A stretch of 64,000 nucleotides of DNA from Macrostomum lignano. Taxonomy: Eukaryota. This document shows positions 737-54,868 of the stretch, in pieces (within the stretch, counting starts at the first letter, position 1; each line of letters starts with the position of its first letter). The notes under the pieces are model-generated. The model was not told where the DNA came from. It saw nothing but the letters and a program-made list of their open reading frames with translations, and did not search any database. Where the stretch lies: positions 59,625 to 123,624 of the forward strand of contig NIVC01002452.1 of the NCBI GenBank assembly GCA_002269645.1. Reading direction: 5' to 3'. The position numbers and the translations under genes were made by a program.

Positions 737-11081
<10,345 letters not shown>

Positions 11082-11705
11082 TTTTTGCAAAGTGTATTTT
11101 CAGCGAACTACGAGTAACAGATAGCTCTGAGCCAGCTCTCCTCTCTTATAGCAGCGATACAAGCGAGTGCAGTCTTCCCTGCTTTCCTATCCCAATTTTT
11201 TGTGGCAGTGTAACAGACAGAGGTAAGGTGGAGACTTCAGACTGCAGCCCGCGGGGAGACAGAGATTGGCTGCTCGCTACGGACACAAGTTAAAGCTGGC
11301 GAGAGAAGCTGGGGATTTGGGATGGGGGGACGGAGCAGATCCAGGATTAGCAAAACGCGGCCTATGAGCCTATAAAAATCAATTCTACCGTATGGCACAG
11401 CTCAGATGTTGATTGATGATGGCTGGGTGCAGTGAGGCCAGGTTACGTGCTCATCTGCCTGCTCATCTGGTTTGGCGCCATCGGACTTAACACAGATATA
11501 TTCTGAGCTCACCCTGTCACGGGACAGATTGCAGTAGGACTGAACACAGCTGAGCGAATGGGATAAAATTAGATAATGATGAAGCAGTTGTTTTGGGATT
11601 TGGGCGATGGATAATTTAATGATTGCATTATTACTAAGTTGCGAAATCACAGCGGAAGTGCATTCTTATTTATAAAAAGCTACATGTAAACAGCTTTAGA
11701 ATTAA

Positions 11706-12940
11706 CCACCTGGGAACAGGGGAATGGGATGGGATGCCACACCTGGGAACAGGGAGATGGAATGGCACACCTGGGAAGAGGGAATGGCCATGGAGAGGCA
11801 CACCCGAGAACAGGGGTACGGGATGCCACACCTGGGAACAGGGGAATGGGATGGCACATCTGGGAACAGGGGTACGGGATGCCACACCTGGGAACAGGGG
11901 AATGGGATGGCACATCTGGGAACAGGGGTACGGGATGCCACACCTGGGAACAGGGGAATGGGATGGCACATCTGGGAACAGGGGTACGGGATGCCACACC
12001 TGGGAACAGGGGAATGGGATGGCACATCTGGGAACAGGGGTACGGGATGCCACACCTGGGAACAGGGGAATGGGATGGCACATCTGGGAACAGGGGTACG
12101 GGATGCCACACCTGGGAACAGGGGAATGGGATGGCACATCTGGGAACAGGGGTACGGGATGCCACACCTGGGAACAGGGGAATGGGATGCCACACCTGGG
12201 AACAGGGGAATCGGATGCCACACCTGGGAACAGGGAAATGGGATGGCACACCTGGGAACAGGGGAATGAAGAGGCACACCTGGGAACAGGCGAATAGGAA
12301 GCGCACCTGGGAACAGGGAAATGGAGAGGCACACCTGGGAACAGGGGAATGGAGAGGCACACCTGGGAACAGGGGAATGGAGAGGCACACCTGGGAACAG
12401 GGGAATGGAATGGCACACCTGGGAACAGGGGTACGGGATGCCACACCTTGGAACAGTGGAATGAAGAGGCACACCTGGGAACAGGGGAATGGGATGGCAT
12501 ACCTGGGAACAGGGGAATGGAGAGGCACACCTGGGAACAGGGGAATGGAGAGGCACACCTGGGAACAGGGGTACGGGATGCCACACCTTGGAACAGTGGA
12601 ATGAAGAGGCACACCTGGGAACAGGGGAATGGGATGGCATACCTGGGAACAGGGGAATGGAGAGGCACACCTAGGAACAGGGGAATGGGATGGCACACCT
12701 GGGAACAGGGGAACGGAGAGGCACACCTGGGAACAGGGGAATGGAGAGGCACACCTGGGAACAGGGGAATGGAATGGCACACCTGGGAACAGGAGTACGG
12801 GATGCCACACCTTGGAACAGTGGAATGAAGAGGCACACCTGGGAACAGGGGAATGGGATGGCATACCTGGGAACAGGGGAATGGAGAGGCACACCTAGGA
12901 ACAGGGGAATGGGATGGCACACCTGGGAACAGGGGAACGG
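11706..12940. repeat. 28-bp minisatellite with alternating 56-bp higher-order units, between the KLHDC8-like and FSTL-like genes
   Basis: CACACCTGGGAACAGGGGAATGGGATGG alternating with CACATCTGGGAACAGGGGTACGGGATGC. Confidence 0.96.
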
Positions 12941-13679
12941 GGTGGCTTGTTCTTGTTAGTTCGTATTGTATTGGATTGTACACATGTATATTTATTTAAT
13001 GAATGTTTCACACCAGTGCGCACTAAAACATCACGCTTACATCACGGCGCGCACTTCTGCTTTTGCGCGCTAATCTAGCGCACTCCCTCAATTTCGGAGC
13101 AAGAGAAAATAATGAGTAAAACTAATAAAACAATATGGAACTTTTCAATTGCAGGTATTGATTGCTGCAATATTATTTAAATGTGCATGCACATTGTGTA
13201 TGTTTAGCAATAGTTATAAAAGGCAGAAATCTTGCACATAGCATGCCAATGCCTTTACAAACAAATAAATCAGAAGTATTAAAAAAGCAAAAATGAACTA
13301 TTAAGCATAAAGCCAAGAATTGTTTTATAGCAGTAAGCATTGATTAGGTAATAAATATGTAGAAAACAATAAAAGTCACGCAGTATAGTGACAGGCTACT
13401 AAAGAGTCTCACAAGTCAAGGATAGCAGAGGTCGAAGCCAGCCACGATTCAAGATATTTTAACTACACTACTTGAACTAACCAAATAAGTAGGACAAAAA
13501 GCATTTAAACTTCATCAGAATTAGAAAAACATTTTCCCATCATTTTGGCCTTAACAAAAAGTTAAGAAAAAAGTAAGTTATAACAAATCAGGACTGCATC
13601 ACGAATCTGTTTATGATGGACAGCAACTTTTTAGCGATTTGAAATTATTGGAAGCAGCCGCGTAGGGAGAGAAGTTGAC

Positions 13680-14481: not shown

Positions 14482-17400
14482 GTCAGGCAGACAGACAGAC
14501 AGGCAGACAGACAGACAGACAGACAGACAGGCAGACAGACAGACAGGCAGACAGACAGTAGCAAGCTGATTCCCGTACCGAATCCGGCAGCGAGGATGAC
14601 CCGGCCATCGTCCAGAGTACACTGGGCGGCGTCGGCCCGGCCAATCAGCAGGTTGGCACACTCGGACCATTGCTCTGCGTGTGGGGTGTTAAAGAAAGAT
14701 TAGCTTTTCAATGTGGGAACTGCAACTCGCATAGAGTGGCCGATACAAGCAGAGCCTCGTAGGTTGAGTTGGATTGGGGCGATTCTCAGGTGGGATTGGG
14801 GCGATTCTCACGGTTGGATTGGGGCGATTCTCAGGTGGGATTGGGGCGATTCTCAGGGTTGGATTGGGGCAATTCCTAATGTTAGATTGGGGCGACTCTC
14901 AGGTGGGATTAGGGCGATTCTCAGGTGGGATTGGGGCGATTCTCACGGTTAGATTGGGGCGATTCTCAGTGCTGGATTGGGGCGATTCTCAGGTGGGATT
15001 GGGGCGATTCTCAGGTGGGATTGGAGCGATTCTCAGGTAGGATTGGGGCGATTCTCAGTGCTGGATTGGGGCGATTCTCAGGTGGGATTGGGGCGATTCT
15101 CAGGTGGGATTGGAGCGATTCTCAGGTAGGATTGGGGCGATTCTCAGTGCTGGATTGGGGCGATTCTCAGGTGGGATTAAGGCGATTCGCAGGGTTGGAT
15201 TGGGCCGACTCGCAGGGTTGGATTGGGCCGATTCGCAGGGTTGGATTGGGCCGATTCGCAGGGTTGGATTGGGCCGATTCTCACGGTTGGATTGGGCCGA
15301 TTCGCAGGGTTGGATTGGGCCGATTCGCAGGGTTGGATTGGGCCGATTCGCAGGGTTGGATTGGGCCGACTCGCAGGGTTGGATTGGGCCGATTCGCAGG
15401 GTTGGATTGGGCCGATTCGCAGGGTTGGATTGGGCCGATTCGCAGGGTTGGATTGGGCCGATTCGCAGGGTTGGATTGGGCCGATTCTCACGGTTGGATT
15501 GGGCCGATTCTCACGGTTGGATTGGGCCGATTCGCAGGGTTAGATTGGGCCGATTCGCAGGGTTGGATTGGGCCGATTCGCAGGGTTGGATTGGGCCGAT
15601 TCTCACGGTTGGATTGGGCCGATTCGCAGGGTTGTATTGGGCCGATTCTCACGGTTGGATTGGGCCGATTCGCAGGGTTGGATTGGGCCGATTCTCACGG
15701 TTGGATTGGGCCGATTCTCAGGGTTGGATTGGGGGCGATTCTCAGGGTTGGATTAGGCCGATTCGCAGGGTTGGATTGGGCCGATTCTCACGGTTGGATT
15801 GGGCCGATTCGCAGGGTTGGATTGGGCCGATTCGCAGGGTTGGATTGGGCCGATTCGCAGGGTTGGATTGGGCCGACTCGCAGGGTTGGATCGGCAACAA
15901 TAGCAATCTAACAGCTGCTCACCAGTGTCCAAATCGAACGAATGGCACAGGCAGGAGAAGCCGCTGGCCAGATTGCCGGGGTCCAGGCCGCCCATGCAGA
16001 GGACCCGGCGGCCAGTGCGGGCATAGATGGGGAACACGCGGCCGTGGCTGGGCAGGTCGGGCAGTGGGCGCCATTTGCAGGCGCGGAAGTCGAATACTTC
16101 GCAACCGGCTACAGGGGTTCGACCCTCTCGACCGCCTGGCAGTGTTCGAAGCAACCAATTAGCAACTAGTTGAGTTTAACAGATAGAATAGAGTATGGGA
16201 TAATGAGAAAGGAGAGACAGCTGGGAAGGGTGAGGGACAGTTGTAGCTAAAACGAGTAGAAAATCCGGGCGCTGGCAGAGCAAGCCTGAGATGGGATTTC
16301 CCTAACAATAAATTAGAGAAAGATTTGCTCTTCGACACTAGCATCATACTTGTTAGGCTAAAGGATCAACTTGAGCCTCTGTGGTAGTGCACTAATGTCT
16401 GAGGCCTGTCAGTTATACTACTACATGTATGCAGATATAAGGCACGTCAGCGTCTTCAAATGGCACACAGATAAATTGGTATGCAAATTACGGGATTAAG
16501 ATCAAGGAAAGTGCACGAGTGTGCAACAAGAGACTGCAAACGGCTGGGAAAAAGTCAGTCAAATGTAGCTATTCAAACATTTATTTTCCCGTTGCCTAGC
16601 TATTTGCTTCAACAAAGATTCTAAGTGACAATCGATTGGCTGATTTCTATATTTTTAGAGTTTCAATTCTCAGCTACCAAATATGGCAAATTGTCAAAGA
16701 AGCGATACAATATGCCGGGAATAATTTTAGATGCAATCACCGCTGTCTTTTTTTACTAACAAAGCAGCAGCGCGATGCTGGATATAATTCAAACAGTAGG
16801 AAAGGACTGTTTAAATAAGACGAATCGGCGCTCATCGCCATAAGGGTCAAATGCGATGCGTGCTGGAGTCGATGACTAGCTGGAGCGTGCTGAGCAAGAT
16901 TCAGCAAGGTAAGCCAATGACAATATCGGACCAATACAAGGCCAGGAGAAGCCAATGCCAGCCTGAAGGGTTCCGCATCGCGACGCAGCCAGCCTCCTCT
17001 ATCCCCCCTCATTATAAGTGAAGCAACGTCCAGGAAACCAGGAGGAATTTTTGCTGACGCAGACATACCTTCAATATCGTTGGCATTGAGGCTCAATAAA
17101 ACAGTAAATCTCAAGCTCCAAATTTACTTCGTTAGGCAATAAAGGTAAGTTTCGATAACTTCAGTGATATTGTCCTGTAAGTCGTGACAGTGCGTGCCGC
17201 AGCACAGGAAGGAAAAGTTTCAGGGCGATAACTCAGTTCCAAGAATCAATACGGGTCGAAGGCAAAAATATCATATGATCTAGTCTGTCTTTATCTCAAT
17301 TCGATTCGGACTCGAAAAACTCACTTTTAAGATACTCAAGCTAGGAAGGAAAGTCACTTGTCCTGAGTTTCCCTCACTGGCACGGTCGTTGAGAGCTAAA

Positions 17401-20400
17401 AGTATTACTTCTGCACACTACAGACTGCTGCAAGGATTTTAATGAGATCTTAACACTCCACAGTCAGAGTTTACGAGGGTCACTCCGAAAGTTTTTAGAA
17501 CGGAACGGTTATAATGCTAATAACAAAACAAAACTCTAAAATTTTCAAAGTAACTCCCTCCAGTAGCGATGCACTTCTCCATTTGGCGAAACCATTGCTC
17601 AAAAGCGTGTGAGAAGGCCGAACTTGGCAGGTGTCAATTGCATGCATGTAAGCTTGCAGGGCTGCCTCTGGGGTCTCAAATCGCTGGCCCCGAATCTGCT
17701 GTTTGACTGTCGGAAACAGGAAAAAGTCGCAGGGGGCCAGGTCAGGCGAGTAGGGTAAGTGGGAGACCAGCTTGACTCCATTTTGCTCCAGGAAGGCAGA
17801 AGTCAACCGTGCAGAGTGGGTGCTGGCGTTGTCCTAGTGCAGCTGGCGGCCTCGGGTTCGTGTTTTGTCGCCTCTGGAACCAAGCGCTGATGACCTGAGG
17901 AAGGCAGTGGCTGGTGTACCATGCCGCAGTCACCGTGCGATGATCCTCCAGGGGCACCGACACCAGATGGCCGGAGGCGGTGATAAAGGAGGCGACTATC
18001 TTCTTTGCGACTGTAACTCGTCGTAGGTTATTTGCCTGTTCTAGTTTACCAGTCGCTCAGCTTTATTGATGTTGTGCTGGGTTACAGCTGTCGAGGGCCG
18101 ACCGCTGCGACCTTATCACTCAGGCAGGTGCGCTGCGAACGAAACTCGCGAAACCAGTTAAACAAATAAACAAGACACACGAATGAGCCACAAGAAAGTA
18201 CTCAAAGAAATACATGTACAAGCAACAGATTATAATGTTTTAGAAAAGCGAGCAGTTGTGAACCAGTTTTTTTTTAAACTCTTACTACCCACAGATGCCG
18301 TCCCAACGCAGCATTCCCAATTTGATCACGCTGGCAGCCGCTACATCGCTGCTACTGCTGGCAATCAGTAGCCAAACTGGCATCGTCACTGCCGCCGCAG
18401 TGTCCGAGCCGCAGAACTCCGGAGTGCGCAACGTAGCCCGAGATCGGTACGACGATTTGGCTAACCGGCTGGCGGCTTCCGTGCTACTGAGCGAGGAGGA
18501 GCCGCAGCTGATGCAGTCAGGAAACACGGACGAGAACTACCCGGTTCCTGAAGTTGGCTTCAAGCTCCTTCGCCAGCATCGGCAGCAAGGAGGAGTCGGA
18601 CGGCAGCAGCAGAAGAAGTGGTACGAGTGGGGCAAGTGAGCAATGAAAGCGCAACAGCTTTTATCGAATCGACCCAGAGAGCCGGCCATATTTCGATCTA
18701 CTAATATCCGACTGATTCCTATTATAAACTGATAACAGTGACATTGAAAGTAAAAATCGACTGCGGCTTTAAGTGCGCTTGCGTTACCGTTTGCAATACC
18801 GTTAATAACAACAGTTTCTATCATTAAACGCCATGGACAACTCAAGTAAAACAAAATAATCATTGCAATTTTGAAAAAGGCGGACTAAATGGCCGTTTTC
18901 AGCTTAAGCCTATAAATTATTTGTTTTAAAATCCAGGTGCAGATCATAGATTGAGAATAGCCCAGTATCAAGTCGTATTGCAATCTTACTGTAAATTAGA
19001 CTCGAACTGTCTAGAGTGCTTCTAGTCACAACAAATAGTCAGCCAGGCGGAAGTGAGAGCATCTCACTTCATCTTCATCTGACTAGGATGTTTCGATCAT
19101 AGCATCAACTCCAAGCCGATGCTGATCTATGCAAATATGAGCTGTCAAAACGTCCACAAGCTGTCCACAATAGCACAGGACCAGAGCAACTTTCACTTTC
19201 TGTCGTCATTTCACTCCAACGCACTCGAAAGCTGAAAGTGAGCTTAACGATAAAATCGCAAGGAACCCCAGTGGCGCAATATGGCACTATAAGGGTTGGG
19301 GCTGGCACTGTAGAATGCCCGCGGATTCTATGAACTGTGGGGGAGAGGACTGGATATGCGCGCATAACACTGGGCATAAGCGCGCTGTGCCAACAGCAGC
19401 TAGATTAAGTGCGCAAGTTGTACATCTTTTTGCATGATCCAGAATAAGAGTGCAACGAATGTGTTCGACTTTGGAATGAGCGCACAGGCTATTCTGTTTG
19501 ATTTTTGACCATTTCAATTCTTAATAATTTTACTTTTCTGAGTAGCTCTTTAACAAAAGTTCGATTGCTAGCTACTCCGTCTAAAATATAGATAACTTAT
19601 AAACATCTAGCCTCTCCCATCATAGAGGGGGTGGCTCCACCCCTCTGTACCAGATTGCAAACACGTTTCTGATAGGTTGATCTTTTCTGTGGCTATATTT
19701 GTAAAGAAAATAAAGAGCTACAGAAGACGGCCGCCGAGGCTCAAAACTGTTCATCAAATATGGCTATAGATAGCAAGAGTGGTAGCAAAATAGGATTCCG
19801 AGCTACTGCAAGAACTGCCCAGATCGCATTCTGCAACGTCACCCTCACTCATCCCATGCCCCATCCATAACTATTAGCAGCTGTATTTATAATCACAATA
19901 AAAAACCAGATGTTTACAGCGCCGATGCGCTAATGACATATTAGGCCAATATGAGTTGTTCTCAAAAGCGGCTAGGGCTTTAAAGTCACAAAGCAACCAG
20001 CCGCGTTTAAGCAACAAACTAAACTAAAAAACGTAACTATGTAGCAGCAGCAGCATTGGCGGCACGTTTGAGATCCCATCAACTGCATGAAAAGCTACTC
20101 AAATAAAAAGCAACTAGCTTTATCCCAAATTGCCATCTTTGATTTAGGGCTCCCGTTTTAGAACTGGCAGTTTTGGCAAACAATAGCAGCACAAATGCTT
20201 GAGGAGAGTTGCTCGTTGCAACACAAAGGAGAATCGGCATTGATCTGCCATCTGATTCCCGACAAGCCTATCTTCGCATCATGGATCCTTCTTCGTTTCA
20301 GTTATGAATTTTTTATAGCACAGATAATGCGCGCTTGAATCATTTAGGAATCATTTTAATTTAGGATCGCTCTGGCATCCAGCAGCAACCCCATTTTACC

Positions 20401-23400
20401 CAGGCTATTCCAGTATTGTTAGTCGCGAATTCTGCTGGCTTTTATTATGAAAACCAGTGATGATTGCAATTTTTAAGCAACAATAATTTTACGATTTGAA
20501 TTAAAAAAAACAATTTAACTGTGTCTTGCTGTAAAGTAGCTTTATATATCTTAGAACAAAATTTGATTGCTTTCAAAGCAGCTTTGCACATACTTCATCT
20601 ATCAGCAAGTTTGACACTTCGCCGTGTAAAGCGGAGCTGTTCGATTCACCAAGATCCAGACACGGCGGGCATTGTTGCCTCAGAGACTTGGGAGAAGCTT
20701 TCAGTCTCACCCGCCTCTCCCCCTTTTTCCTCTCTTTCAACGCGACGCTGGTACAGTTTGTCCATCGCAAACAACCGCATAATGCCGCCGCTGCGTGCGG
20801 GATACGGCGTGAAGGAGAGCTAAAAAACTCCAGCTAATGTATATCGATATGAGCTGCCAACGGGTTTTAGGGAAATAAGTTGTGCGATTAGTCTCATGTC
20901 TCATGCAACTACACCAGTATATACCAATTAGAATATGTGTGAATGTCATTTTTACCGTTTTTCTACTTTGCAGCACATTTAGGCAGTCAGAAGATGCCGT
21001 CAAGTCTCATCGTCAACTCTCAACAAGATAATGTCAAGTCACAATAAGATAACGTCAAGTCTCAATAAGATACCATCAAGTCTCAACAAAATACCGTCAA
21101 GTCTTAGCAGGATGCCATTAAGTCTCAGCAAGATACCGTCAAGTCTCTAAAAGACATTATCAAACTCTATAAGACATCGTCAGATTTACGAGTATAAATA
21201 CACGGGGGGGTAACATAAAGACACCCCAGATCCTGGTGTTTTTTTCGTAAAATTCTTATGCCATTCGCAAGATCAATATGGCATTGACAGAATCTATATT
21301 TTTATTATTTAACGATATCTTACCAACATTCCTTTCAAGCACTACTTTTAAGGACAATAATAACAACGAAATTGAAATTTGAAAAAAGAATCCTGAAAAA
21401 CTAAATTTTGTTATAACGCCAACAAAATCACCAATCTATTTCAATATTCGACCATGTCATCGCAAGATTATGACACAAAAAACCGAAGGTCAGATCTAGA
21501 AGACACAACCAAGTCCCTAAAAGACTTCACCACTTTTCTTAATACACAGCACGCAATATTTTTAGTCATTCTCGTATTCCCTCCAAATGCATTGGAACAT
21601 CTACAAGAAAACTCAACTAGGAAACTCAAACGCGCAATGCCGATTTAACTTGAGTCTGGACAGTTTCACAGTGTCGAATAACGCAATTTCCTTGCTAAGT
21701 GATCGAGATTCGAGGTTGGGTTTTAATCAGAGCCTTCTTTTTCCTCTAAAAAACAACCCCCCGAGTTGTCAACGCATGGGGGGTCAGTTAAGTTCAAGGC
21801 TAAGGTCAATTTTAAGTGTCTCGCATTTTATACTGTTGTCTAAAGTTTTTTTGCGATTAGTTAAATTTTCAGACTGCTACAAACACAGTTAGTTAACTTA
21901 ACTTGCACGCCTTGGCGTAAGATTCCAAACCTACCACTTTGGAAGCGGTACAAAACAGTTGAAAAAACCTGTCAGTTATCAGTCTGCGATAGCGCAGTCA
22001 TTTTCAACCCCAACTTAGTTCCTTTTTTAATTGCAGCTAGTTCGTCCTAGAGGCAGCGCGTGTGCTGCAGGGCTTGTGTGCAAAGCGCAGTTTGCGTACA
22101 CTTGTACACATACACAAGCAAGTCTTCAAGGCTGAGAGACAAAACTGTGCATTTAAAGGTAAGCAAGAAGTTAACGAATCGGCCAAAAGCAAAAAAGAAC
22201 GCGCGCACACAAGGACCTTGCATGAATCATGAATCACCTACTCAGGTAAGTTTTAGAGAATTTCGACTGGGAAAAATTCCGATACAGCTGCATCTGTCAA
22301 AAAAGAAAGACAAGACTTCACTCCGGGCTGTCTGCTTTCTGTTGAGCGGCATTCCGGCATTCAAGAATGCTCAACGCAGGAGAGAGGTACTCAGCTGGCC
22401 CAGCGGAGAGGAAATAGCATTCGCCGAATTCTCTTTAACGCCTTATAATAAATAGAGGCTTCAAGCAGCAAGCAACACTTGCGGCTGAATGCCTAACAGA
22501 ATAGGATCGATAGCTAAAGCGATGCCATTGGCAATTACACTGTCAAGACAATCCTTACAATCGTCGTATCCTTTAGATAGTGCTTGACAGATGACAGACA
22601 ATAGAATGACAAGTAGCTAAGTACTAGTTAACTTAAACATTTAACTGAATGAGACTATGGAACCCTATTGTTGGAAGTATATTGTCAATATAGCGTTTGA
22701 AATGCAGCAAAAATATAAGTACTTAAATTTAATTCTGAGATGCTTTAAAAGTGCTGACACTGGTGTCTTGACAAACTTTATACCACCCATTTCAACCATC
22801 CTTTCGGTTACATCGCAAGCCTGCAGTATAAGTTCAAACCTTCTGCTTCATAGCAAGCGATCCAGTATATTCTCAAACCTGCTTCATAACAAGCCTGCAG
22901 TATAATCTCAAACCCTATTTTATTCCATCGTAAACTTTTTTTCGTTCTTTTCAACTCTTCAGCCAAGGACTTCTACTTCTACTGCTGATACCATTGGCTT
23001 CAGCGGCCGCCCTGAAAGAAAGCCGCAGCAGCACAAAGCCGCCGCTACTACTGATTTCATTGGACGGCTTTCGGTACGACTATCTGACACTATTCGCTAA
23101 TGAGACGCCAAATATGAATAGACTGGCGCAACTAGAAGGCGCCTACGCGGCCAGGGTTAAGCCGGCCTACATGACCAAAACAGCGGCCAACCATTGGACC
23201 ATGGTTACTGGCCAACACCAAGAGGTTCACGGCGTAGTCAACAATCAGATGTTCGACCCGGTTTTCAATGAAACAGTCGACATGTTTAATACTGACGACG
23301 AGCGTTGGTGGAACGCGTCCGAGCCAATTTGGCTGACAGCGGAAGCGAGCGGCCTGCGCGCTGGTGTGTACAGGTGGCCCGGCGGTCACGTGGCCATTGG

Positions 23401-26400
23401 TGGCCGACTGCCAACCTACTTGACGCCGCGGACAGAAAAGCGGGGTGACAAAGTTGCGCAATCACCGGAGCTCAGCGCCGGGCTTGACAGGGTGCTGGAC
23501 TGGCTGACTAACGGCCAGGCCAGACTGGTGGTGGCGTATCACGACGAGCCAGACTTCACCGCGCACGGCCAAGGACCAGGCGCTGTGGGACCCGTGCTGG
23601 CGGAGATCGACGCGGCGATCGGACGGTTTCTCAGACAGCTGCAGGAGCGCGGCATGCAACAGCGGGTCAATGTGATCATCACGTCTGATCACGGTAAGCT
23701 TCGTTTGGATTGCTTTTTAGTCTTGACCTTCAGTATCTGGGAGGGCGGCAGTGGCCCAGCAACTGAGGATCTGGGAGGCTTGCCCAGCAACAGACACTCT
23801 GGGAGGCTGGCCCAGCAACTGACACTCTGGGAGGCTGGCCCAGCAACTGACACTCTGGGAGGCTGGCCCAGCAACTGAGGATCTGGGAGGCTGGTCCAGC
23901 AACTGAGGATCTGGGAGGCTGGCCCAGCAACTGGGGATCTGCGAGGGCGGCGGTGGCCCAGCAACTGGGGATCTGGGAGGCTGGCCCAGCAACTGAGGAT
24001 CTGGGAGGCTGGCCCAGCATCTGAGGATCTGCTTTAAACAAAGCCTCAAAACTCCCGCAGGCATGCTGCCAGTGAATCACAACAACACGATCCGAGTGAA
24101 CGGCAGGAAGCACCCAGCTACCAGAGCAGTGCTGCAGATGGGCGTCGCCCTAGGCCTATTCGCCAAGCCGAACAGATCGATGGAGCTGTACTCGGCCATG
24201 CTAGAAGACATTGGAAAGAGCGGCAAGAGCAAGATGGCAAATGTTGTGCACCGTCGGGAACTGCCAGATCACTTGCACTATAAGAGGCACAGACGAATAC
24301 CGGATATACTTATAATGCCAGTCAAAGGCTATCAAATCGCCGACAATAATGACACAGTCTGGAAGCTGGGCATGCACGGCGGAGAGCCGGACTGGGACGA
24401 GATGCAGGTGCCTCTGCTGGCCATTGGTCCGGCATTTGTCAAAGGCGCCCGAACGGATAGCACAGCCGAGCAGACAGATATCTATGGCCTAGCCTGCCGG
24501 CTGATAGGGTTGCCAGCCAGACCGCACAATGGCAGCGACAATGGGCCGCTGAGCAGTCTGCTGCACAATGACGGAAATCTAGCTCAAGCTGAGCTGCCGC
24601 TGCTGCTGCCACTGTTGCTAACCGTTTGGAAATTAATGCTCAACATTTCGTAACCATCTTAAACATTACTATTTTAACTAATTTTGCATTAATAATTAAA
24701 TTTGGCATAACAAACTCAAGCATGGAAGAAATGATTTTGTCGACATCTAATAATAATGAGTACACGATTGATTCAGAATATCACTACTGTTAGACCCTGA
24801 TGCAGTTTGGGTCCAAATCTGAAACTGACAGAGCTGTGGAAATCTCATCCCATGTGATGCAAAAGAAAATCTTACTCTGAGGTAGCTACAGAAGTCTCAC
24901 CTTCCGTGAGATAGCATTGGAAATCTCACCGTGTAAGATTACAATGGACATCTCACCGTTAGATAACAATGGACATCTCACCGTGAGATTACAATGGACA
25001 TCTCCCCATGAGATAACAATGGACATCTCACCATGAGATAGCAATGGAAATCTCATTCATGAGACAGCAATAAAAATCTCACCCCCTGAGATAGCAGTGG
25101 AAATCTCATCTATGAGATAGCAATGAAAATCTCATCCCTGAGATAGCAGTGGAAATCGCACCCCTGAGATAGCCATGGAAATCTGACCCATGAGATAGCC
25201 ATGGAAATCTCACCCCTGAGATAGCCATGGAAATCTGACCCATGAGATAGCCATGGAAATCTCACCCCTGAGATAGCCATGGAAATCTGACCCATGAGAT
25301 AGCCATGGAAATCTCACCCCTGAGATAGCCATGGAAATCTCACCCCTGTGACAGCAGTAGAAATTTCACCCTGAGATAGCAGTGGAAATCTCACCCCTGA
25401 AATAGCAGTGGAAATCTCACCCCTGAGGTCGCAGTGGAAATCTCATCCCTGAAATAGCAGTGAAAACCTCATCTCTGAGATAGCAGTGAAAATTTCACCC
25501 CTGAGATAGCAAAGGAAATCTCACCGAACAGATAAAGCGATTCCTCAACCAGGAAGCAGCCGGGCGAATACCTTTTAACACTCATTGGCGGCAAGTTGCC
25601 AACCTTTTTACGCTCGGGATCGAAACAATAAAACTCGTTCCTAGTCGAAGTGGCCGTTTCCATGCCGCCTGCGATGAAAAATTTGCCGCCGCGACTCGCT
25701 ACGGAGCAGCTCTTGACGGCGACGGGCAGCCGGCCCAGCTCCAGCCACTGCTGCGACTCAACGTCCAGTGCGTCAATAGTGGCCACACCGGATTGGCCTG
25801 GGCCGGAGCCGCCGAAGGCGTACACCCGCTTGTCTGCGTTAAATTTGGATTGAAGAGATTGCCAATTACAACCGCAAACCAATTAGCGAACAATATTTAC
25901 CCAACCAATGAACCAATCAGAGACAGACAAGCCTAGCAATTCTACGTTCAAACCAATCAGACGCCAGTGTTTCATTCCAACCAATCAGAGACTGACAAGA
26001 AGCCAGTGTGTCATTCCAACCAATCAGAGACTGACAAGAAGCCAGTGTTTCATTCCAACCAATCAGAGACTGACAAGAAGCCAGTGTTTGATTTCAACCA
26101 ATCAGAGACTGACAGTGACAAGAAGCCAGTGTGTCATTCCAACCAATCAGAGACTGACAAGAAGCCAGTGTTTGATTTCAACCAATCAGCCACGATCTAG
26201 TAAGCCCTAAGCCAATCGGATTAAAACTAAGAACCCTTTATTTCGGCTCACCCAAAGTCGCAAGCTGCACGCCAGCCCTGGGTGTTGGCAGGCTGGGCGC
26301 TGCGCTCCAGGACCCGGCAATATCGCCATCGCCGCTGCCAAGTCGAATACTTTCGCAGGAGTCAATCGGCTGACCAGTCTGGGTGCAGCCGCCGATCACG

Positions 26401-26922: not shown

Positions 26923-27334
26923 TATTGTGAATCAGGATAATTCTGTTCTTCCAACAAAAAGTAGAAAAGGGAAGTAAAAAATATCATTCCTAAAAAACAA
27001 ACTAACTGCTGGCTACAGAAAATATTATCGAATCTAATTAGTCAAATATTGATAAAGTGATTTTTGTAGGAAAAATAGGGATCAGAGTAAATTAGCCCAA
27101 TTTTGATGTGTTTTAATCATTGAATTTTCAAGAAAATTTTTCATACAGAAACGTCTTTAACTGGCTTGAAAAAATCGTTATTTCTAGTTTCTGTAGCCCA
27201 CTACAAACATATTCTACAAAATTCGCATGCCTCCAAAACTTTCCAAAATACATTATTAAGCCTTCATTTATCTGAGAAGATTTTTGGGATTTAGCACGGA
27301 GTTAAAAGTACACAGGGTAGCGGCAAGGACAGTT

Positions 27335-28030
27335 GGGGGACTGAGAGGGCATCGGCAAGGACATCCGAGGACTGAGAGGGCAGCGGCAAGGACATCCGAG
27401 GACTGAGAGGGCAGCGGCAAGGACATCCGAGGACTGAGAGGGCAGCGGCAAGGACATCCGAGGACTGAGAGGGCAGCGGCAAGGACATCCGAGGACTGAG
27501 AGGGCAGCGGCAAGGACATCCGAGGATTGAGAGGGCAGCGGCAAGGACATCCGAGGATTGAGAGGGCAGCGGCAAGGACATCCGAGGACTGAGAGGGCAG
27601 CGGCAAGGACATCCGAGGACTGAGAGGGCAGCGGCAAGGACATCCGAGGACTGAGAGGGCAGCGGCAAGGAAATCCGAAGATTGAGAGGGCAGCGGCAAG
27701 GACAACCGAGGATTGAGAGGGCAGCGGCAAGGACATCCGAGGACTGAGAGGGCAGCGGCAAGGACATCCGAGGACTGAGAGGGCAGCGGCAAGGACATCC
27801 GAGGATTGAGAGGGCAGCGGCAAGGACATCCGAGGATTGAGAGGGCAGCGGCAAGGACATCCGAGGACTGAGAGGGCAGCGGCAAGGACATCCGAGGACT
27901 GAGAGGGCAGCGGCAAGGACATCCGAGGACTGAGAGGGCAGCGGCAAGGAAATCCGAAGATTGAGAGGGCAGCGGCAAGGACATCCGAGGATTGAGAGGG
28001 CAGCGGCAAGGACATCCGAGGACTAAGAGG
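27335..28030. repeat. 31-bp minisatellite, ~22 copies
   Basis: GAGGACTGAGAGGGCAGCGGCAAGGACATCC. Confidence 0.97.
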
Positions 28031-28528
28031 GTATCATTGACGCTGAAAGAGATAAAAAAGAAGAGTAGCGACAGGGCGCAGACAAGAATTAAGAGACAGG
28101 TGAACTCGGCGAAGCGCGAGAACACCTGGAAATGGAATCAAAATTAAAGGTAGAAAAAGTCATAAAAGGAAAATAGATGAAAGATTCTGGATGCACGGGA
28201 TGAAGTTTATCTAGGGTTGAATTGAGGGTTAGGGGGGTAAATTATGCATTAGGATTCCTATATGCTGACCGGGTTGCGTGTTTCTATAAGAGAAGAATCG
28301 AAGCGGAATTTATTCCTTGCTAATTTACAATCTATCGCAACTCATGATAATTACTGCTGCGACTGTACCTGCAATTCCTACGAATTGAAAGAAAAATATT
28401 TAAGTTTTAAACAAAACAGGTTTATTGTCTTCGAATTCCTTTTCAATTTGACAATCTTTATTAACTGCTAACATAGTTAACTGATCACTTAAAAATGCAG
28501 AGATAATTTCTCTAAGCAATCCGGCTGG

Positions 28529-44861: not shown

Positions 44862-45671
44862 ATGGCTGAGAAAGGTTTGACCGCCAGTGCAGCGCTGCCC
44901 AGAGTTTTCAGTACCGGCAACTTTAAGGAATGGCTGCAGCGTTTCAATGTATGCGCAAAAGTCAACAAGTGGGACACGTGCAAAGCGGAGCGACTGGCCA
45001 CATTTTTGGATGGCGAGGCTCTCGTCGTTTATTTGGAACTGTCGGCAGGAGATCAGGCAGACTACGACAAAGTAGTCCAGGCATTGGATGATGCATTCCA
45101 CCCGAACCGCGAGCACTTCGCCGTCATGGAGGCGTTCAAATCAAGGAAGATTTTGTCGAATGAGACTCCACGCATGTATCTTTACGAGTTAAAGAAGATG
45201 CTCAAAAGCTCCTCCGTGGACAACAAAGATGCTCAAGAGGCTCTGCTGTTCCATCAGTTCGTCTGTGGCCTTCCCGAATCCGTGAGCTGGCAGATTCGCG
45301 CGGACTCCAGCGTTAAGACCTCAGAGCAAGCGCTTCAAAAGGCCCAGCTACTGATGCAGCACAGCTCGCCAAGCATCCCAGCAGCAGCGGTGCAACCTCA
45401 GTCGAGCCAATCCAGCGAAGTTCAGGAGCTGCGGGACACTGTGCAGAGTCTGCAGGCATCGGTGGGCACCCTGAGTTCCCAGCTGCAGCAGCTGGCAGCC
45501 TGTGGAGTGAGGACGAGTAGCACAACGAGACCGCAGCACCGTTCGAAGTCTGACATCATCTGCTACAACTGCCACAAGGCCGGCCACATTGCCAGAGATT
45601 GCTACAGCAGGCGACAGCCGGGAAACGCCAGAGGCTGGGGTGTGCGGGCCCGCAACCCCGGCCAGCAGTAA
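44862..45671 (+). CDS. gag: Gag with CCHC zinc knuckle
   Basis: 269-aa ORF containing CYNCHKAGHIARDC. Confidence 0.95.
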   Translation: MAEKGLTASAALPRVFSTGNFKEWLQRFNVCAKVNKWDTCKAERLATFLDGEALVVYLELSAGDQADYDKVVQALDDAFHPNREHFAVMEAFKSRKILSNETPRMYLYELKKMLKSSSVDNKDAQEALLFHQFVCGLPESVSWQIRADSSVKTSEQALQKAQLLMQHSSPSIPAAAVQPQSSQSSEVQELRDTVQSLQASVGTLSSQLQQLAACGVRTSSTTRPQHRSKSDIICYNCHKAGHIARDCYSRRQPGNARGWGVRARNPGQQ

Positions 45672-48600
45672 CTGCGGGCCCAGCAGCAGCGGCTTCAAGG
45701 CCGGCGCTCACAGTCGGCGGGATCTTCGACGGATGCAGCGTCGCGCCCGACCGACTATCGCAGTGTGAGTGCAAGCTTGATGGCAGAAGTTTGAAGGCGC
45801 TGTTAGACACCGGAAGCCAGTGCTCACTAGTTGAGTCCAGCATCCTGACAAAATCCCAGCTCAGACAGGCAACTGCAGCCAGAGTGCAACTTCATTCAGT
45901 GAACAAGCAGCCAATTAGCATAGAACGGCAAATCGAATTGCCACTTACAGTCGGTGGAGTGACAGCCCGGCAATTGTTTTTCGTTGTGTCAGGTTTGGTC
46001 TGCCCTGTCATTGTTGGAGTCGACTTCATCGGCAAGCATAATTTGCAACTGGACTTCACAGGATCTTCACAAGAAGCCGGCCAAGTCTGCAGCACCAGAT
46101 TCCAGGCTGACACCGACGATCCAGTTGACATCGAAGACGCACTCGTCCCCGAGTTCAGCTGTGAAGAGTTCGAGTTGCCGACTACCGACGACCCTGATGT
46201 ACAACGGCTGCTGGTGGAGTTCAAAGACTTGTTCAAGAAAAAGCCGGGACTAACTCATCTGCAACAGCACCGAATTGTTCTCTCGGATGAAGTACCTGTC
46301 CGAGTGCCACCGCGCCGAATGCCTGTGCATTACCGGGAGAAGGTAGAGCAGCTGATTCAGGAACTGCTGGAGAACGACGTGATAGAGCTGAGCGAAAGTC
46401 CGTACGTGGCCCCACCGGTGTACGTGACAAAGAAGGATGGCAGTCTCCGCCTGACCATAGACTATCGAGAGATCAACAAGAAGACTATTCGCTCTGCACA
46501 TGGAATTCCGTTGATGGAGGAGGCAAGAGATCGAATCGCAGGCAGTTCAGTGTTCTCTGTGTTGGATCTCAATGGAGGCTATTTTCAAATTCCGATGGCG
46601 GAAGAAGACAAGCTAAAAACTGCTTTCTGTCCGGGACCAGGGATGCCGCTGTACCAATTTAAGAGAATGCCCCAAGGTCTGTCGGGGGGCCCAAGCACAT
46701 TCTGCATGCTAATGTCAAAAGTTTTCAACGGCTGCGATTTCATCTTCACGTTCTTCGATGACAGCCTGTGCTTCTCAAAGACCAAGTCGGATCATCTGCG
46801 GCAACTTCGAGAGACCTTCGAGCGACTTCGAGCAGCCGGACTGACATTAAGAGGCTCCAAGTGCAAGATCGCGGTACCCGAAGTGACCTTTCTCGGCACA
46901 CGGTATTCAAAGGATGGTGCCCAGCCCAGCCAGGAGAAGCTGGAGGCAATTCAGCAGTGGAGAGAGCCGAGGTCAGCCAAGGAGGTGCGTCAGTTCATCG
47001 GCCTGTGCAACCAATACCGACGCCATGTAGCCAACTTCGCTGCCATCGCCGCACCGCTGCACCATCTGACTGGCAAGGGCGTTCCATTTGACTGGACTTC
47101 GGAATGCCAGACGGCCTTCGACGAGCTCAAAAGGTGCCTAATTAGTCCTCCGATCCTGGTGAACCCAGATTTCACTAAGGAGTTCTCAGTCTTCACGGAT
47201 GCCAGTGGCAGCGGAGTCGGTGCAATTCTCAAGCAAGGCGAGGCGGTGATCGAGTTCTCAAGCCGCGCATTCAATTCAGCTGAGAAGAAATACTCTGCAA
47301 CAGAAAAGGAGTGCCTGGCCATCCTGCACGCATTCCAAGTTTTTCGCCACTATCTTCTCGGCAAGCATTTCACGGTGCACACGGATCACTGCCCGCTCAC
47401 CTACATCGATTCACAGAGAGTTGACAGCTACGGCAGGCTAGGACGATGGCGTCTGCTGCTTCAAGAGTTCGACTTCACCGTCAAGTACCGAAGAGGCGTT
47501 GAGAACTCAGATGCTGACGCGCTGTCCAGACTGCACGGCCAAGAAGTCGCAGCTACGCAGCTGACTCCGGAAATCGACACTGAAGAGCTCAAAACTGCGC
47601 AGCGACATGACCCGGAGCTCAGCCAGGTGATTCAGGCGATGGACAAGGACGCAGAAATTGCACCCAGATGGCGAGCAGGACCACTGCAGCAACTCGGCAG
47701 AATCTGGAAGAAGCTAAAGCTGGATGATGACGGTGTTCTACTGCGCAAGTTCAATGACCCGGACGGCCTGCGGGAGGTTCCAGTGGTGCCAGCGCGGCTT
47801 CGACAACAGTTTTTGACCAACGCTCACGAAGGTCTGGGAGGTCATTTCGGAGCCGAGAAATGCTACCGCACACTGAAACTGACCGCCTACTGGCCCGGCA
47901 TGGCTGAAGACATCGTGCAACACTGCCAGAGTTGTTCTGTCTGTCAGGAGAAGAAAGCGGGCTCGCGGACCAGCGCGCCACTCGGAGAACTGCCAATCGG
48001 CTCGCCGTGGGATTCTGTGGCTATCGACATCGTCAAGGTGGCGCCATCATCGCGCGGCAACAAATACCTGCTGGTGGCTCAGGATCAGTTTTCCAAGTAC
48101 CTGACGGCCGTGGCGATTCCTGACCAGACTGCTGAGACTACTGCTCGCGCCTTCCTCTCCATCTGCTCCCAGACTGGACTTCCCCGAGTCATCCACTCCG
48201 ATCAAGGACCGAATTTCGAGTCTCAGCTTTTTCAAGACACTCTGCGAGGCCTGGGAGTCACGAAGACAAGAACAACGGCTTACAATCCCAAAGGCAACGG
48301 ATTAGCGGAGTCGGGCAACAAGTCAGTGCTGCAGTTACTCAGGTGTTTCACCGAGCGAGAGAGCGAGTGGGAGGACAAGCTGCCACTGATCCTGCTGTCC
48401 TACAATTCCCGGGTGCACTGCTCAACACAGCTGCCGCCACTGAAGGTGTTCACCGGGCGCGATCCGAGCCTGCCGGTCATCAGCCAGCAGTCCAGGCGAT
48501 TCTATGACGTGCGCACCTACGCCGACAAGCTCGAGGGCGACCTGCTGCGAATTCGAGAGTTTGTCGAGGAGCATCTGGTGCAGGCGGCTGGCGAGCAAAA

Positions 48601-48955
48601 GAGCGGCTACGACAGGTCGACCGGGCAGCTGCGCACGTTCAGTCCTGGAGACGAGGTCCTGCTGCGCATCGAGCTGAGGGGCTCCAAGCTGGCGCCGTAC
48701 TGGGAGCCGGGCTGGCAGGTGCTGTCGCAGCGGGATCTGGTAGTCGAAATCCAAAAGATCGAGAACGGCCGGACCCGCAGGGTGAATGTGAATCGTCTGC
48801 GGCCGCGGATCCTGCCAGTCCCTGACGGAGAGCGCTTCCTGCAGCCGCCCTTTGCGCACGCGGCGCACGGCGGCGATGAGGCGGACGAGGAGCCGCCCCC
48901 GAGACGCTACCCGGTGCGTAGGCGGATGCCGGTGGATCGCTATGTGGCCGGTTGA
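45620..48955 (+). CDS. pol: Pol (protease, RT, RNase H, integrase), probably expressed by -1 frameshift from gag
   Basis: ALLDTGS (protease); LDLNGGYFQI, RMPQGL, FFDD (RT); TDASGSGVGAIL (RNase H); H..LGGH..C..C, AIDI, HSDQGPNF, NGLAE (integrase). No stops over more than 1100 codons. Confidence 0.96.
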   Translation, partial: GKRQRLGCAGPQPRPAVTAGPAAAASRPALTVGGIFDGCSVAPDRLSQCECKLDGRSLKALLDTGSQCSLVESSILTKSQLRQATAARVQLHSVNKQPISIERQIELPLTVGGVTARQLFFVVSGLVCPVIVGVDFIGKHNLQLDFTGSSQEAGQVCSTRFQADTDDPVDIEDALVPEFSCEEFELPTTDDPDVQRLLVEFKDLFKKKPGLTHLQQHRIVLSDEVPVRVPPRRMPVHYREKVEQLIQELLENDVIELSESPYVAPPVYVTKKDGSLRLTIDYREINKKTIRSAHGIPLMEEARDRIAGSSVFSVLDLNGGYFQIPMAEEDKLKTAFCPGPGMPLYQFKRMPQGLSGGPSTFCMLMSKVFNGCDFIFTFFDDSLCFSKTKSDHLRQLRETFERLRAAGLTLRGSKCKIAVPEVTFLGTRYSKDGAQPSQEKLEAIQQWREPRSAKEVRQFIGLCNQYRRHVANFAAIAAPLHHLTGKGVPFDWTSECQTAFDELKRCLISPPILVNPDFTKEFSVFTDASGSGVGAILKQGEAVIEFSSRAFNSAEKKYSATEKECLAILHAFQVFRHYLLGKHFTVHTDHCPLTYIDSQRVDSYGRLGRWRLLLQEFDFTVKYRRGVENSDADALSRLHGQEVAATQLTPEIDTEELKTAQRHDPELSQVIQAMDKDAEIAPRWRAGPLQQLGRIWKKLKLDDDGVLLRKFNDPDGLREVPVVPARLRQQFLTNAHEGLGGHFGAEKCYRTLKLTAYWPGMAEDIVQHCQSCSVCQEKKAGSRTSAPLGELPIGSPWDSVAIDIVKVAPSSRGNKYLLVAQDQFSKYLTAVAIPDQTAETTARAFLSICSQTGLPRVIHSDQGPNFESQLFQDTLRGLGVTKTRTTAYNPKGNGLAESGNKSVLQLLRCFTERESEWEDKLPLILLSYNSRVHCSTQLPPLKVFTGRDPSLPVISQQSRRFYDVRTYADKLEGDLLRIREFVEEHLVQAAGEQKSGYDRSTGQLRTFSPGDEVLLRIELRGSKLAPYWEPGWQVLSQRDLVVEIQKIENGRTRRVNVNRLRPRILPVPDGERFLQPPFAHAAHGGDEADEEPPPRRYPVRRRMPVDRYVAG

Positions 48956-54562: not shown

Positions 54563-54868
54563 TAATAATTGATAATAATTGATTACACCTGCCCAATGGG
54601 CAGATGTGCAACCGACAGCTCAGCCGCAGCTATTGCGCGGCGCATCTGAAGGCTGCGTACGGCTGTTCAGTCCAAGGACTGGGGGGTCGCCACACACACC
54701 CTCAATTACCCCAGCTAATGCTGGTACCCATTTTACAGCTGGGTAAACTGAAGCAACGCAGAGTTAAGTGTCTTGCTCAAGGACACAAATTGTTGCAGAG
54801 GGATCGGGAATCGAACCCCCGACCTTCAAGTCGTGAGTCCGACACCCTAACCACTAGGCTACAACCCC
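54563..54868 (-). mobile_element. tRNA-derived SINE, near full length
   Basis: A box TAGCCTAGTGG, B box GGTTCGATTCC, central GTGTCCTTGAGCAAGACACTTAAC..ACCCAGCTGTAAAATGGGTACC, and short AATTATTATC-repeat tail. Co-linear with 29106-29326. Confidence 0.9.

Follow-up and report, generated by a model that had tools for sequence, protein, structure and literature searches.

A candidate precursor of an amidated WYEW-type peptide, restricted to its lineage, in the flatworm Macrostomum lignano

Introduction

Can a short open reading frame (ORF) with no recognisable relatives outside its own species, lying antisense within another gene model, encode the precursor of a secreted peptide signal and, if so, would that peptide belong to one of the known families of tryptophan-amidated peptides (Wamides)? 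The question is raised by positions 18295-18639 (+) of a 64-kb stretch of the Macrostomum lignano genome located on contig NIVC01002452.1 of assembly GCA_002269645.1 (Mlig_3_7), hereafter referred to as the window. A first-pass annotation of this DNA, made from the letters and their translations, had placed at this position an unassigned neuropeptide precursor, predicted to release the amidated tetrapeptide WYEW or an N-terminally extended form of it. The results presented here describe the ORF as a plausible, undescribed and lineage-restricted candidate neuropeptide precursor, ordinary in kind, whose predicted peptide is new. In the reading favoured below, it is a real, transcribed, lineage-restricted gene of M. 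lignano, encoding a secretory preproprotein from which an amidated peptide signal of the WYEW type would be released; in our judgement, this reading stands about the same chance of proving right as of proving wrong.

Results

The open reading frame and its predicted products

Direct reading of the window identified an uninterrupted ATG-to-TGA ORF of 114 codons at 18295-18639 (+), a complete coding sequence (CDS) of 114 amino acids (aa) plus stop within a single frame, which corresponds to a hypothetical protein of the BOX15_Mlig010817 type in GenBank and translates as MPSQRSIPNLITLAAATSLLLLAISSQTGIVTAAAVSEPQNSGVRNVARDRYDDLANRLAASVLLSEEEPQLMQSGNTDENYPVPEVGFKLLRQHRQQGGVGRQQQKKWYEWGK. All the elements listed in the first-pass annotation, namely a signal peptide, an acidic spacer and the terminal series R-QQGGV-GR-QQQ-KK-WYEW-GK-stop, were present in the sequence. 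The signal peptide and the cleavage sites were assigned by hydropathy and standard motif rules only. The predicted signal peptide (residues 1-33; 18295-18393, + strand) consists of an n-region (MPSQRS), an h-region (IPNLITLAAATSLLLLAI) and a c-region (SSQTGIVTA); its hydrophobic core starts after R5, with Kyte-Doolittle means over 11 residues reaching 2.3 across residues 10-25, and is followed by the polar c-region. According to the -3/-1 small-residue rule, applied by eye, cleavage is likely to occur at VTA/AAV (A33/A34).

Downstream of this predicted site the protein divides into two parts of opposite charge. Residues 34-88 (18394-18558) form an acidic pro-region, or spacer, with a pI of 4.1, while the C-terminal tail (residues 89-114) is basic (pI 11.1) and reads F-K-L-L-R93-Q-H-R96 / QQGGV-G102-R103 / QQQ / K107-K108 / WYEW-G113-K114 / stop. 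Neither part contains cysteine, the Cys count of the whole protein being 0. Cleavage at RxxR and other basic sites is an established rule of precursor processing, and four consecutive elements of the tail can be described in its terms: an RxxR convertase-type motif, R93-Q-H-R96 (18571-18582), where cleavage is predicted; the segment QQGGV-G102-R103 (18583-18603), a possible source of a second product, pQQGGV-NH2, ending in a monobasic site with Arg at P8; a QQQ linker followed by the dibasic site K107-K108 (18604-18618); and the C-terminal peptide WYEW-G113-K114-stop (18619-18639), in which a putative amide-donor Gly is followed by a terminal basic residue. All four lie on the + strand, as do the two flanking signals: a polypyrimidine tract with a CAG acceptor-like site abutting the ATG at 18267-18294 (ttttttttt aaac tcttactacccacAG/ATG), and the hexamer ATTAAA at 18823-18828, a candidate polyadenylation signal, judged by sequence, approximately 185 nt 3' of the stop codon. 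Structure prediction with AlphaFold2 from the single sequence returned no globular fold (mean pLDDT 56, pTM 0.23), with residues 10-28 modelled as a helix. The absence of a fold in this model is weakly compatible with a prohormone and, in a prediction made without an alignment, is not diagnostic.

We infer translation of the ORF, each step of its processing, neuronal expression and any receptor. In the proposed model, the mRNA would probably receive a spliced leader at the AG right before the ATG, and the signal peptide would be removed near A33/A34. A PC2-type convertase would then cut the unstructured pro-region at RQHR96, GR103 and KK108, after which a carboxypeptidase would trim the basic residues and a peptidylglycine alpha-amidating monooxygenase would amidate the exposed Gly residues. 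The predicted products are WYEW-NH2 (calculated [M+H]+ 682.298) or, should the convertase pass over the weaker KK site, pGlu-QQKKWYEW-NH2 (pQQQKKWYEW-NH2; 1305.638), with pGlu-QGGV-NH2 (pQQGGV-NH2; 470.236) as a possible further product; once secreted, the peptide would serve as a signal of the aromatic-amide (Wamide) type. The machinery for such a pathway has been described in this animal: PC2 has a homologue in M. lignano that is expressed across the nervous system and was shown by RNA interference (RNAi) to be essential (PMC4490696; PMC12435804), and the single-nucleus atlas of this species distinguishes pc2+/7b2+ peptidergic neurons. The generic features of a prohormone gene found in the ORF were a signal peptide (heuristic call), basic sites together with a C-terminal Gly, and transcription and coding character (the former through indirect transcript evidence).

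Coding signature and chance expectation

ORF length alone was uninformative, since 43 ATG-initiated ORFs of at least 114 aa were present in the window, many of them within minisatellites. The combination of features was rarer. The window holds 151 ATG-ORFs with a length of 50 aa or more; four of these had a signal-like N-terminus and three a G[KR] end, and a single one, the ORF at 18295-18639, combined both with an upstream dibasic or RxxR site; no such combination was obtained in 200 block-shuffled windows. By our own extrapolation, tens of ORFs combining these features are expected by chance genome-wide, and independent coding and transcript evidence therefore matters.

In order to characterise coding potential, a codon log-likelihood model was trained on the recognisable exons within the window (ENPP, Kelch, CCDC137 and others). 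The ORF scored 48 bits in its own frame vs. at most 15 bits in each of the other five frames, and its per-codon score (0.44) fell within the range of the training exons (0.10-0.50), a score attained by approximately 1% of random 342-nt windows. GC contents at the first, second and third codon positions (0.65/0.44/0.70) followed the same pattern as the ENPP exon, and the ORF stood out as a compositional GC island between AT-rich flanks.

As regards the source of most long ORFs in the window, minisatellite or tandem-repeat arrays were located at 931-1664, 3352-4636, 5938-7314, 7650-8808, 10157-10960, 11670-12983, 14925-16162 and 27268-28125; these arrays are open in several frames on both strands.

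Annotation, transcription and gene copies

The protein encoded by the ORF is an annotated CDS on its contig in the M. lignano assembly. A word-index search over 5.8 billion proteins returned a single relative, 'hypothetical protein BOX15_Mlig010817g3 [Macrostomum lignano]' (98% identity). The corresponding 90% cluster contained PAA47387.1 and PAA57713.1 (g3 and g4), PAA72189.1 (g1) and the copy in the window, i.e. four genomic copies on four contigs, all of them annotated as an intronless CDS of 114 aa. In every copy the gene is located antisense within the long span or intron of a Kelch-repeat gene model, and an ENPP-type phosphodiesterase gene (22229-24653, + strand, in the window; Pfam Phosphodiest, E = 2.7e-54, with a signal peptide of its own) lies on the same strand, 3.6 kb further downstream. 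In UniRef, A0A267E805 and A0A267FGK4 bear the name 'RxLR effector protein', which was rejected as an automatic mislabel because the sequence belongs to an animal and contains no R-x-L-R motif.

RNA was the sole evidence behind the GenBank annotation of Mlig_3_7: transcripts from StringTie/TACO and Trinity were split at trans-splice and poly(A) sites that had been mapped by experiment, those that were non-coding or overlapped repeats were discarded, and TransDecoder called the ORFs (PMC5730564). Since the CDS stems from such a transcript-only pipeline, RNA from Mlig010817 exists, and the gene can be regarded as transcribed, with indirect support that comes through the annotation pipeline. The check for a transcript proposed in the first-pass annotation was in this way answered, although indirectly. 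Spliced-leader trans-splicing affects 38.8% of M. lignano genes (PMC5730564), and the segment at 18267-18294 is probably a trans-splice acceptor, to judge by its composition and position; the Wamide precursor gene of M. lignano shares this acceptor layout (cctctattttcttAG g ATG).

The four copies were approximately 99% identical over the ORF and 3 kb on either side. Variable columns amounted to 3 of 345 (0.9%) in the ORF, with most flanking sequence at 0.6-2.8% per 500-bp bin and one distal upstream bin at 20%. The differences among paralogues comprised three non-synonymous and no synonymous changes, two in the signal peptide (I11L and T12A) and one in the spacer (A56V), and the basic C-terminal tail was invariant across the four copies.

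Directly upstream of the gene, ORF fragments with a mariner/Tc1-like motif (LPYSPDLAPCDFFLFP) were spotted by eye on the opposite strand (17495-17963). This putative remnant, which was present in all aligned paralogous copies, is unconfirmed, as a 103-aa piece of it gave no significant match in Pfam. Rfam and tRNA scans returned nothing at the ORF locus.

With the ENPP-type gene so near, the ORF might serve it as an alternative 5' exon supplying a signal peptide. Both lie close together on the same strand; against this reading, the first exon of the ENPP gene is a separate one at 22229-22245, with a GT donor, and is spliced to 22963, the ENPP protein has a signal peptide of its own (MNHLLSQGLLLLLLIPLASAAA), and the annotation keeps the two genes apart in each of the four copies. 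The alternative-exon reading was rejected on the grounds of this first exon and signal peptide, and is considered hardly credible.

Alternatively, the ORF may be a product of chance, taken for coding by TransDecoder, within an intronic transcript that is specific to the lineage and possibly non-coding or antisense; no functional protein would then be made. Such an origin would suit a short ORF without homologues that is antisense in an intron of the Kelch gene, near a transposase-like remnant, in a window with 43 ORFs as long or longer, and for which 3/3 paralogue differences are non-synonymous. It is opposed by the frame-specific codon usage, equal to that of real neighbouring exons, by the confinement of the GC island to the ORF between AT-rich flanks, by the failure of 200 shuffles to reproduce the combination of signal peptide and amidation site, and by the acceptor-like site placed exactly at the ATG. 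A chance ORF is regarded as improbable.

Homology and literature searches

A full phmmer search over 1.84 billion representative proteins yielded one match only, to a translated repeat, which was judged spurious, and no Pfam family was matched by the ORF protein at E ≤ 10. A degenerate DNA pattern for KKWYEWGK-stop had no matches in JGI metagenome contigs. The coverage of the protein index was controlled with the neighbouring ENPP exon, which returned only matches of at most 43% identity and missed the M. lignano protein itself; a 'no match' in this index is for that reason weak evidence. The profile search for npp-5 genes described below showed that proteins from parasitic flatworms and from M. 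lignano are at least partly represented in the searched data, so that no relative there is similar enough to the ORF to be detected.

In the searchable literature, 'WYEW' occurred in unrelated strings only, 'Mlig010817' appeared in no main text, and no description of the gene or the peptide was found, a negative result that does not extend to the surveys McVeigh 2009 and Koziol 2016.

The lack of homologues would also be expected if the ORF encoded a translated orphan small secreted protein other than a neuropeptide, e.g. one made in glands, epidermis or reproductive tissue, one with antimicrobial action, or one left largely unprocessed, with the G-K ending being coincidental. Many lineage-specific secreted genes have no homologues, the signal peptide and the coding signature suit any secreted protein, and the neuronal site of Mlig010817 expression is an assumption of the neuropeptide reading. 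The distribution of motifs argues in the other direction: the RxxR, G-R, KK and G-K-stop sites crowd the last 22 residues behind a purely acidic spacer, and the absence of Cys and of a predicted fold completes a typical prohormone layout, as in the M. lignano Wamide precursor. An orphan secreted protein of another function is considered unlikely, if the foremost of the competing explanations.

Flatworm Wamide genes

Two 'Wamide' genes, cpp-1 and npp-5, are listed in the planarian prohormone catalogue (Collins 2010 supplement). Smed-cpp-1 contains the series ...KR-VPGWG-KR-SYQWI-KK-TPGWG-KR-TYQWS-KK-TPGWG, in which KK is the predicted cleavage site ahead of TPGW-Gly, and Smed-npp-5 yields SAWRDMPWamide (five copies) and PNWKDMPWamide (Collins 2010 supplement). 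For the Schistosoma gene (Sm-npp-5), AAYMDLPW-NH2 and AAYIDLPW-NH2 have been seen by mass spectrometry (MS).

A profile built from Smed-npp-5 and a synthetic row with both published Schistosoma peptides detected family members in Opisthorchis, Schistosoma, Paragonimus, Clonorchis and Calicophoron, as well as in M. lignano, where the match was BOX15_Mlig029361g1 (E = 2e-11; related label Mlig032062). This protein has a signal peptide, an acidic spacer, a repeat of the form (AYGSMPWG-KR)n and a PWGR-stop end. The genomic ORF of this npp-5-type gene on NIVC01004687.1 (locus L005, positions 3001-3741) encodes 246 aa with 20 tandem AYGSMPWG units, while the annotated BOX15_Mlig029361g1 contains only five, and translation of the locus does not reproduce that protein; the annotation looks like a case of repeat collapse in transcript assembly. 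The peptide AYGSMPWa has been treated in earlier work as deriving from the Wamide propeptide of M. lignano, and it had no effect on DEG/ENaC channels of this species (PMC9234716). As judged from these loci, the canonical Wamide gene of M. lignano is distinct from 18295-18639.

The ORF at 18295-18639 was not among the proteins recovered with the npp-5 profile, and BLASTP comparisons of the ORF with BOX15_Mlig029361g1 and with Smed-cpp-1 gave nothing at E ≤ 100. In agreement with the first-pass annotation, which had been unable to assign the peptide to MIP/allatostatin-B or to APGW/RGWamide precursors, the defining features of these families (spacing, core, copy number and Cys residues) were absent, and the search for an already described family gave no match among npp-5/MIP-type genes, cpp-1/xPGWamide genes, Pfam and the searchable literature. 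The yardstick used in that annotation, W-x6-W, was wrong for flatworms: the peptide sequences cited above (SAWRDMPWa, AAYMDLPWa, AYGSMPWa) indicate that the flatworm Wamide theme, that of the npp-5 peptides, is [W/Y]-x4-W-amide.

Other features of the window

The best index matches of the ENPP-type gene did not exceed 43% identity, and those named by source were bacterial or metagenomic (metagenome-assembled genomes of Acidobacteria/Pyrinomonadaceae and JGI predictions of the AlkP superfamily), a pattern that could be due to an index gap or to an unusual phylogenetic affinity. At 44862-48955 (+), an element of the LTR-retrotransposon type was found, consisting of gag (zf-CCHC) and a long uninterrupted pol ORF with aspartyl protease, reverse transcriptase (RT), RNase H and integrase; it appears to be intact at the ORF level. 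An Rfam tRNA match at 54799-54868 (-), with 35 bits vs. a gathering score of 29, was not called by ARAGORN and could represent a degenerate tRNA or else a repeat of tRNA origin.

Discussion

The ORF at 18295-18639 combines the architecture of a peptide precursor with coding-type composition and a transcript-based annotation, and belongs to none of the families to which it was compared. The earlier interpretation of the locus as precursor-like and unassigned is supported by this architecture and by the family comparisons, while its wording as a neuropeptide, if taken as demonstrated, or as part of an undescribed 'peptide-receptor system' is speculative.

Several points weigh against reading the locus as a gene for a secreted, amidated peptide. 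The protein, its processing, its amidation and the cell type of its product are deduced from nucleotide sequence, and the signal peptide and cleavage sites are heuristic calls. Each predicted peptide occurs only once in the precursor, and convertases cut less readily at KK or at a single Arg than at KR or RR. No homologue of the ORF was found beyond M. lignano, and no other Macrostomum species surfaced in any search. The copies show no sign of purifying selection, but three changes give no statistical power. Finally, an antisense intronic position beside a transposase-like remnant is a setting in which spurious transcripts also arise.

A narrower proposal, put forward tentatively and with more doubt than confidence, is that WYEW-NH2, or its longer form pQQQKKWYEW-NH2, is a true and hitherto undescribed neuropeptide confined to Macrostomum or to Macrostomorpha, and represents a new Wamide branch served by a receptor of its own. 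Candidates for this receptor are the protostome expansion of RFamide/Wamide G protein-coupled receptors (GPCRs) and those DEG/ENaC channels of M. lignano that gave no response to FMRFa, YMRFa, GRTNNKNVFRWa or AYGSMPWa (PMC9234716).

If the proposal holds, the locus would provide a data point on lineage-specific neuropeptides arising alongside a conserved AYGSMPWamide gene, and an additional candidate ligand for orphan flatworm GPCRs and peptide-gated DEG/ENaC channels. M. lignano is the one flatworm with stable transgenesis, and a PC2 reporter line and a single-nucleus atlas are also at hand; the route from gene to cell to receptor could be fast. If the product is not a neuropeptide, the gene would be one of many orphan secreted-protein genes in M. 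lignano, with little wider significance.

Comparison with known peptide families

The ORF resembles the flatworm npp-5 genes in having a signal peptide, an acidic spacer and a short Trp-Gly-basic peptide running into the stop codon (EWGK vs. PWGR), as well as a second aromatic residue upstream of the predicted C-terminal Trp-amide in WYEW; the acceptor AG just 5' of the ATG is shared with the M. lignano npp-5 gene in particular. It differs from them in that npp-5 precursors contain 2-20 tandem copies flanked by KR, with the core [W/Y]-x-x-[DS]-[ML]-P-W, whereas the ORF has one WYEW, lacks [ML]P, uses KK and monobasic sites, and has no detectable sequence similarity to them.

With Smed-cpp-1 and the APGWamide and RGWamide precursors, the ORF shares an acidic pro-region and a Trp-amide tetrapeptide that would be released after KK. 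In contrast to Smed-cpp-1 and to mollusc and annelid APGWamide/RGWamide precursors, it contains neither a PGW nor an RGW core and has one copy of its peptide. Two Cys residues are located near the C-terminus of APGWa/RGWa precursors (Thiel et al. preprint), while the ORF has none.

The family of MIP/allatostatin-B peptides in arthropods and annelids offers a third comparison, as do the WWamides of molluscs: here too, Trp starts the core and an amidated Trp ends the peptide, as predicted for WYEW. MIP/allatostatin-B peptides are defined as W(X5-8)W-amide and are encoded in multiple copies, whereas the ORF has a spacing of W-X2-W and a single copy.

These likenesses allow a reading in which the ORF belongs to a known Wamide family, either npp-5/MIP-type or cpp-1/APGWamide-RGWamide, and has diverged strongly from it. 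Both W-Y-E-W-NH2 and [W/Y]-x-D-[LM]-P-W-NH2 place an acidic residue and another aromatic one shortly before their amidated aromatic end; Smed-cpp-1, whose spacers hold YQW as well, is likewise predicted to release a tetrapeptide Wamide behind KK; and the receptors for aromatic amides in protostomes fall into a single expanded clade (Thiel et al. preprint). Opposed to this are the canonical npp-5-type gene that M. lignano already owns, with 20 AYGSMPWG repeats (Wamide propeptide, PMC9234716), and the properties of the ORF itself, which has no BLASTP or npp-5 profile match, a single peptide copy, no [ML]PW, PGW or RGW, and no Cys pair. Little credence is given to such a divergence, and the reading of the ORF as a lineage-restricted precursor in its own right is preferred. 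Still not a member of the flatworm Wamide theme by its predicted structure, WYEWa nevertheless appears to be closer to that theme than was assumed when the locus was first annotated.

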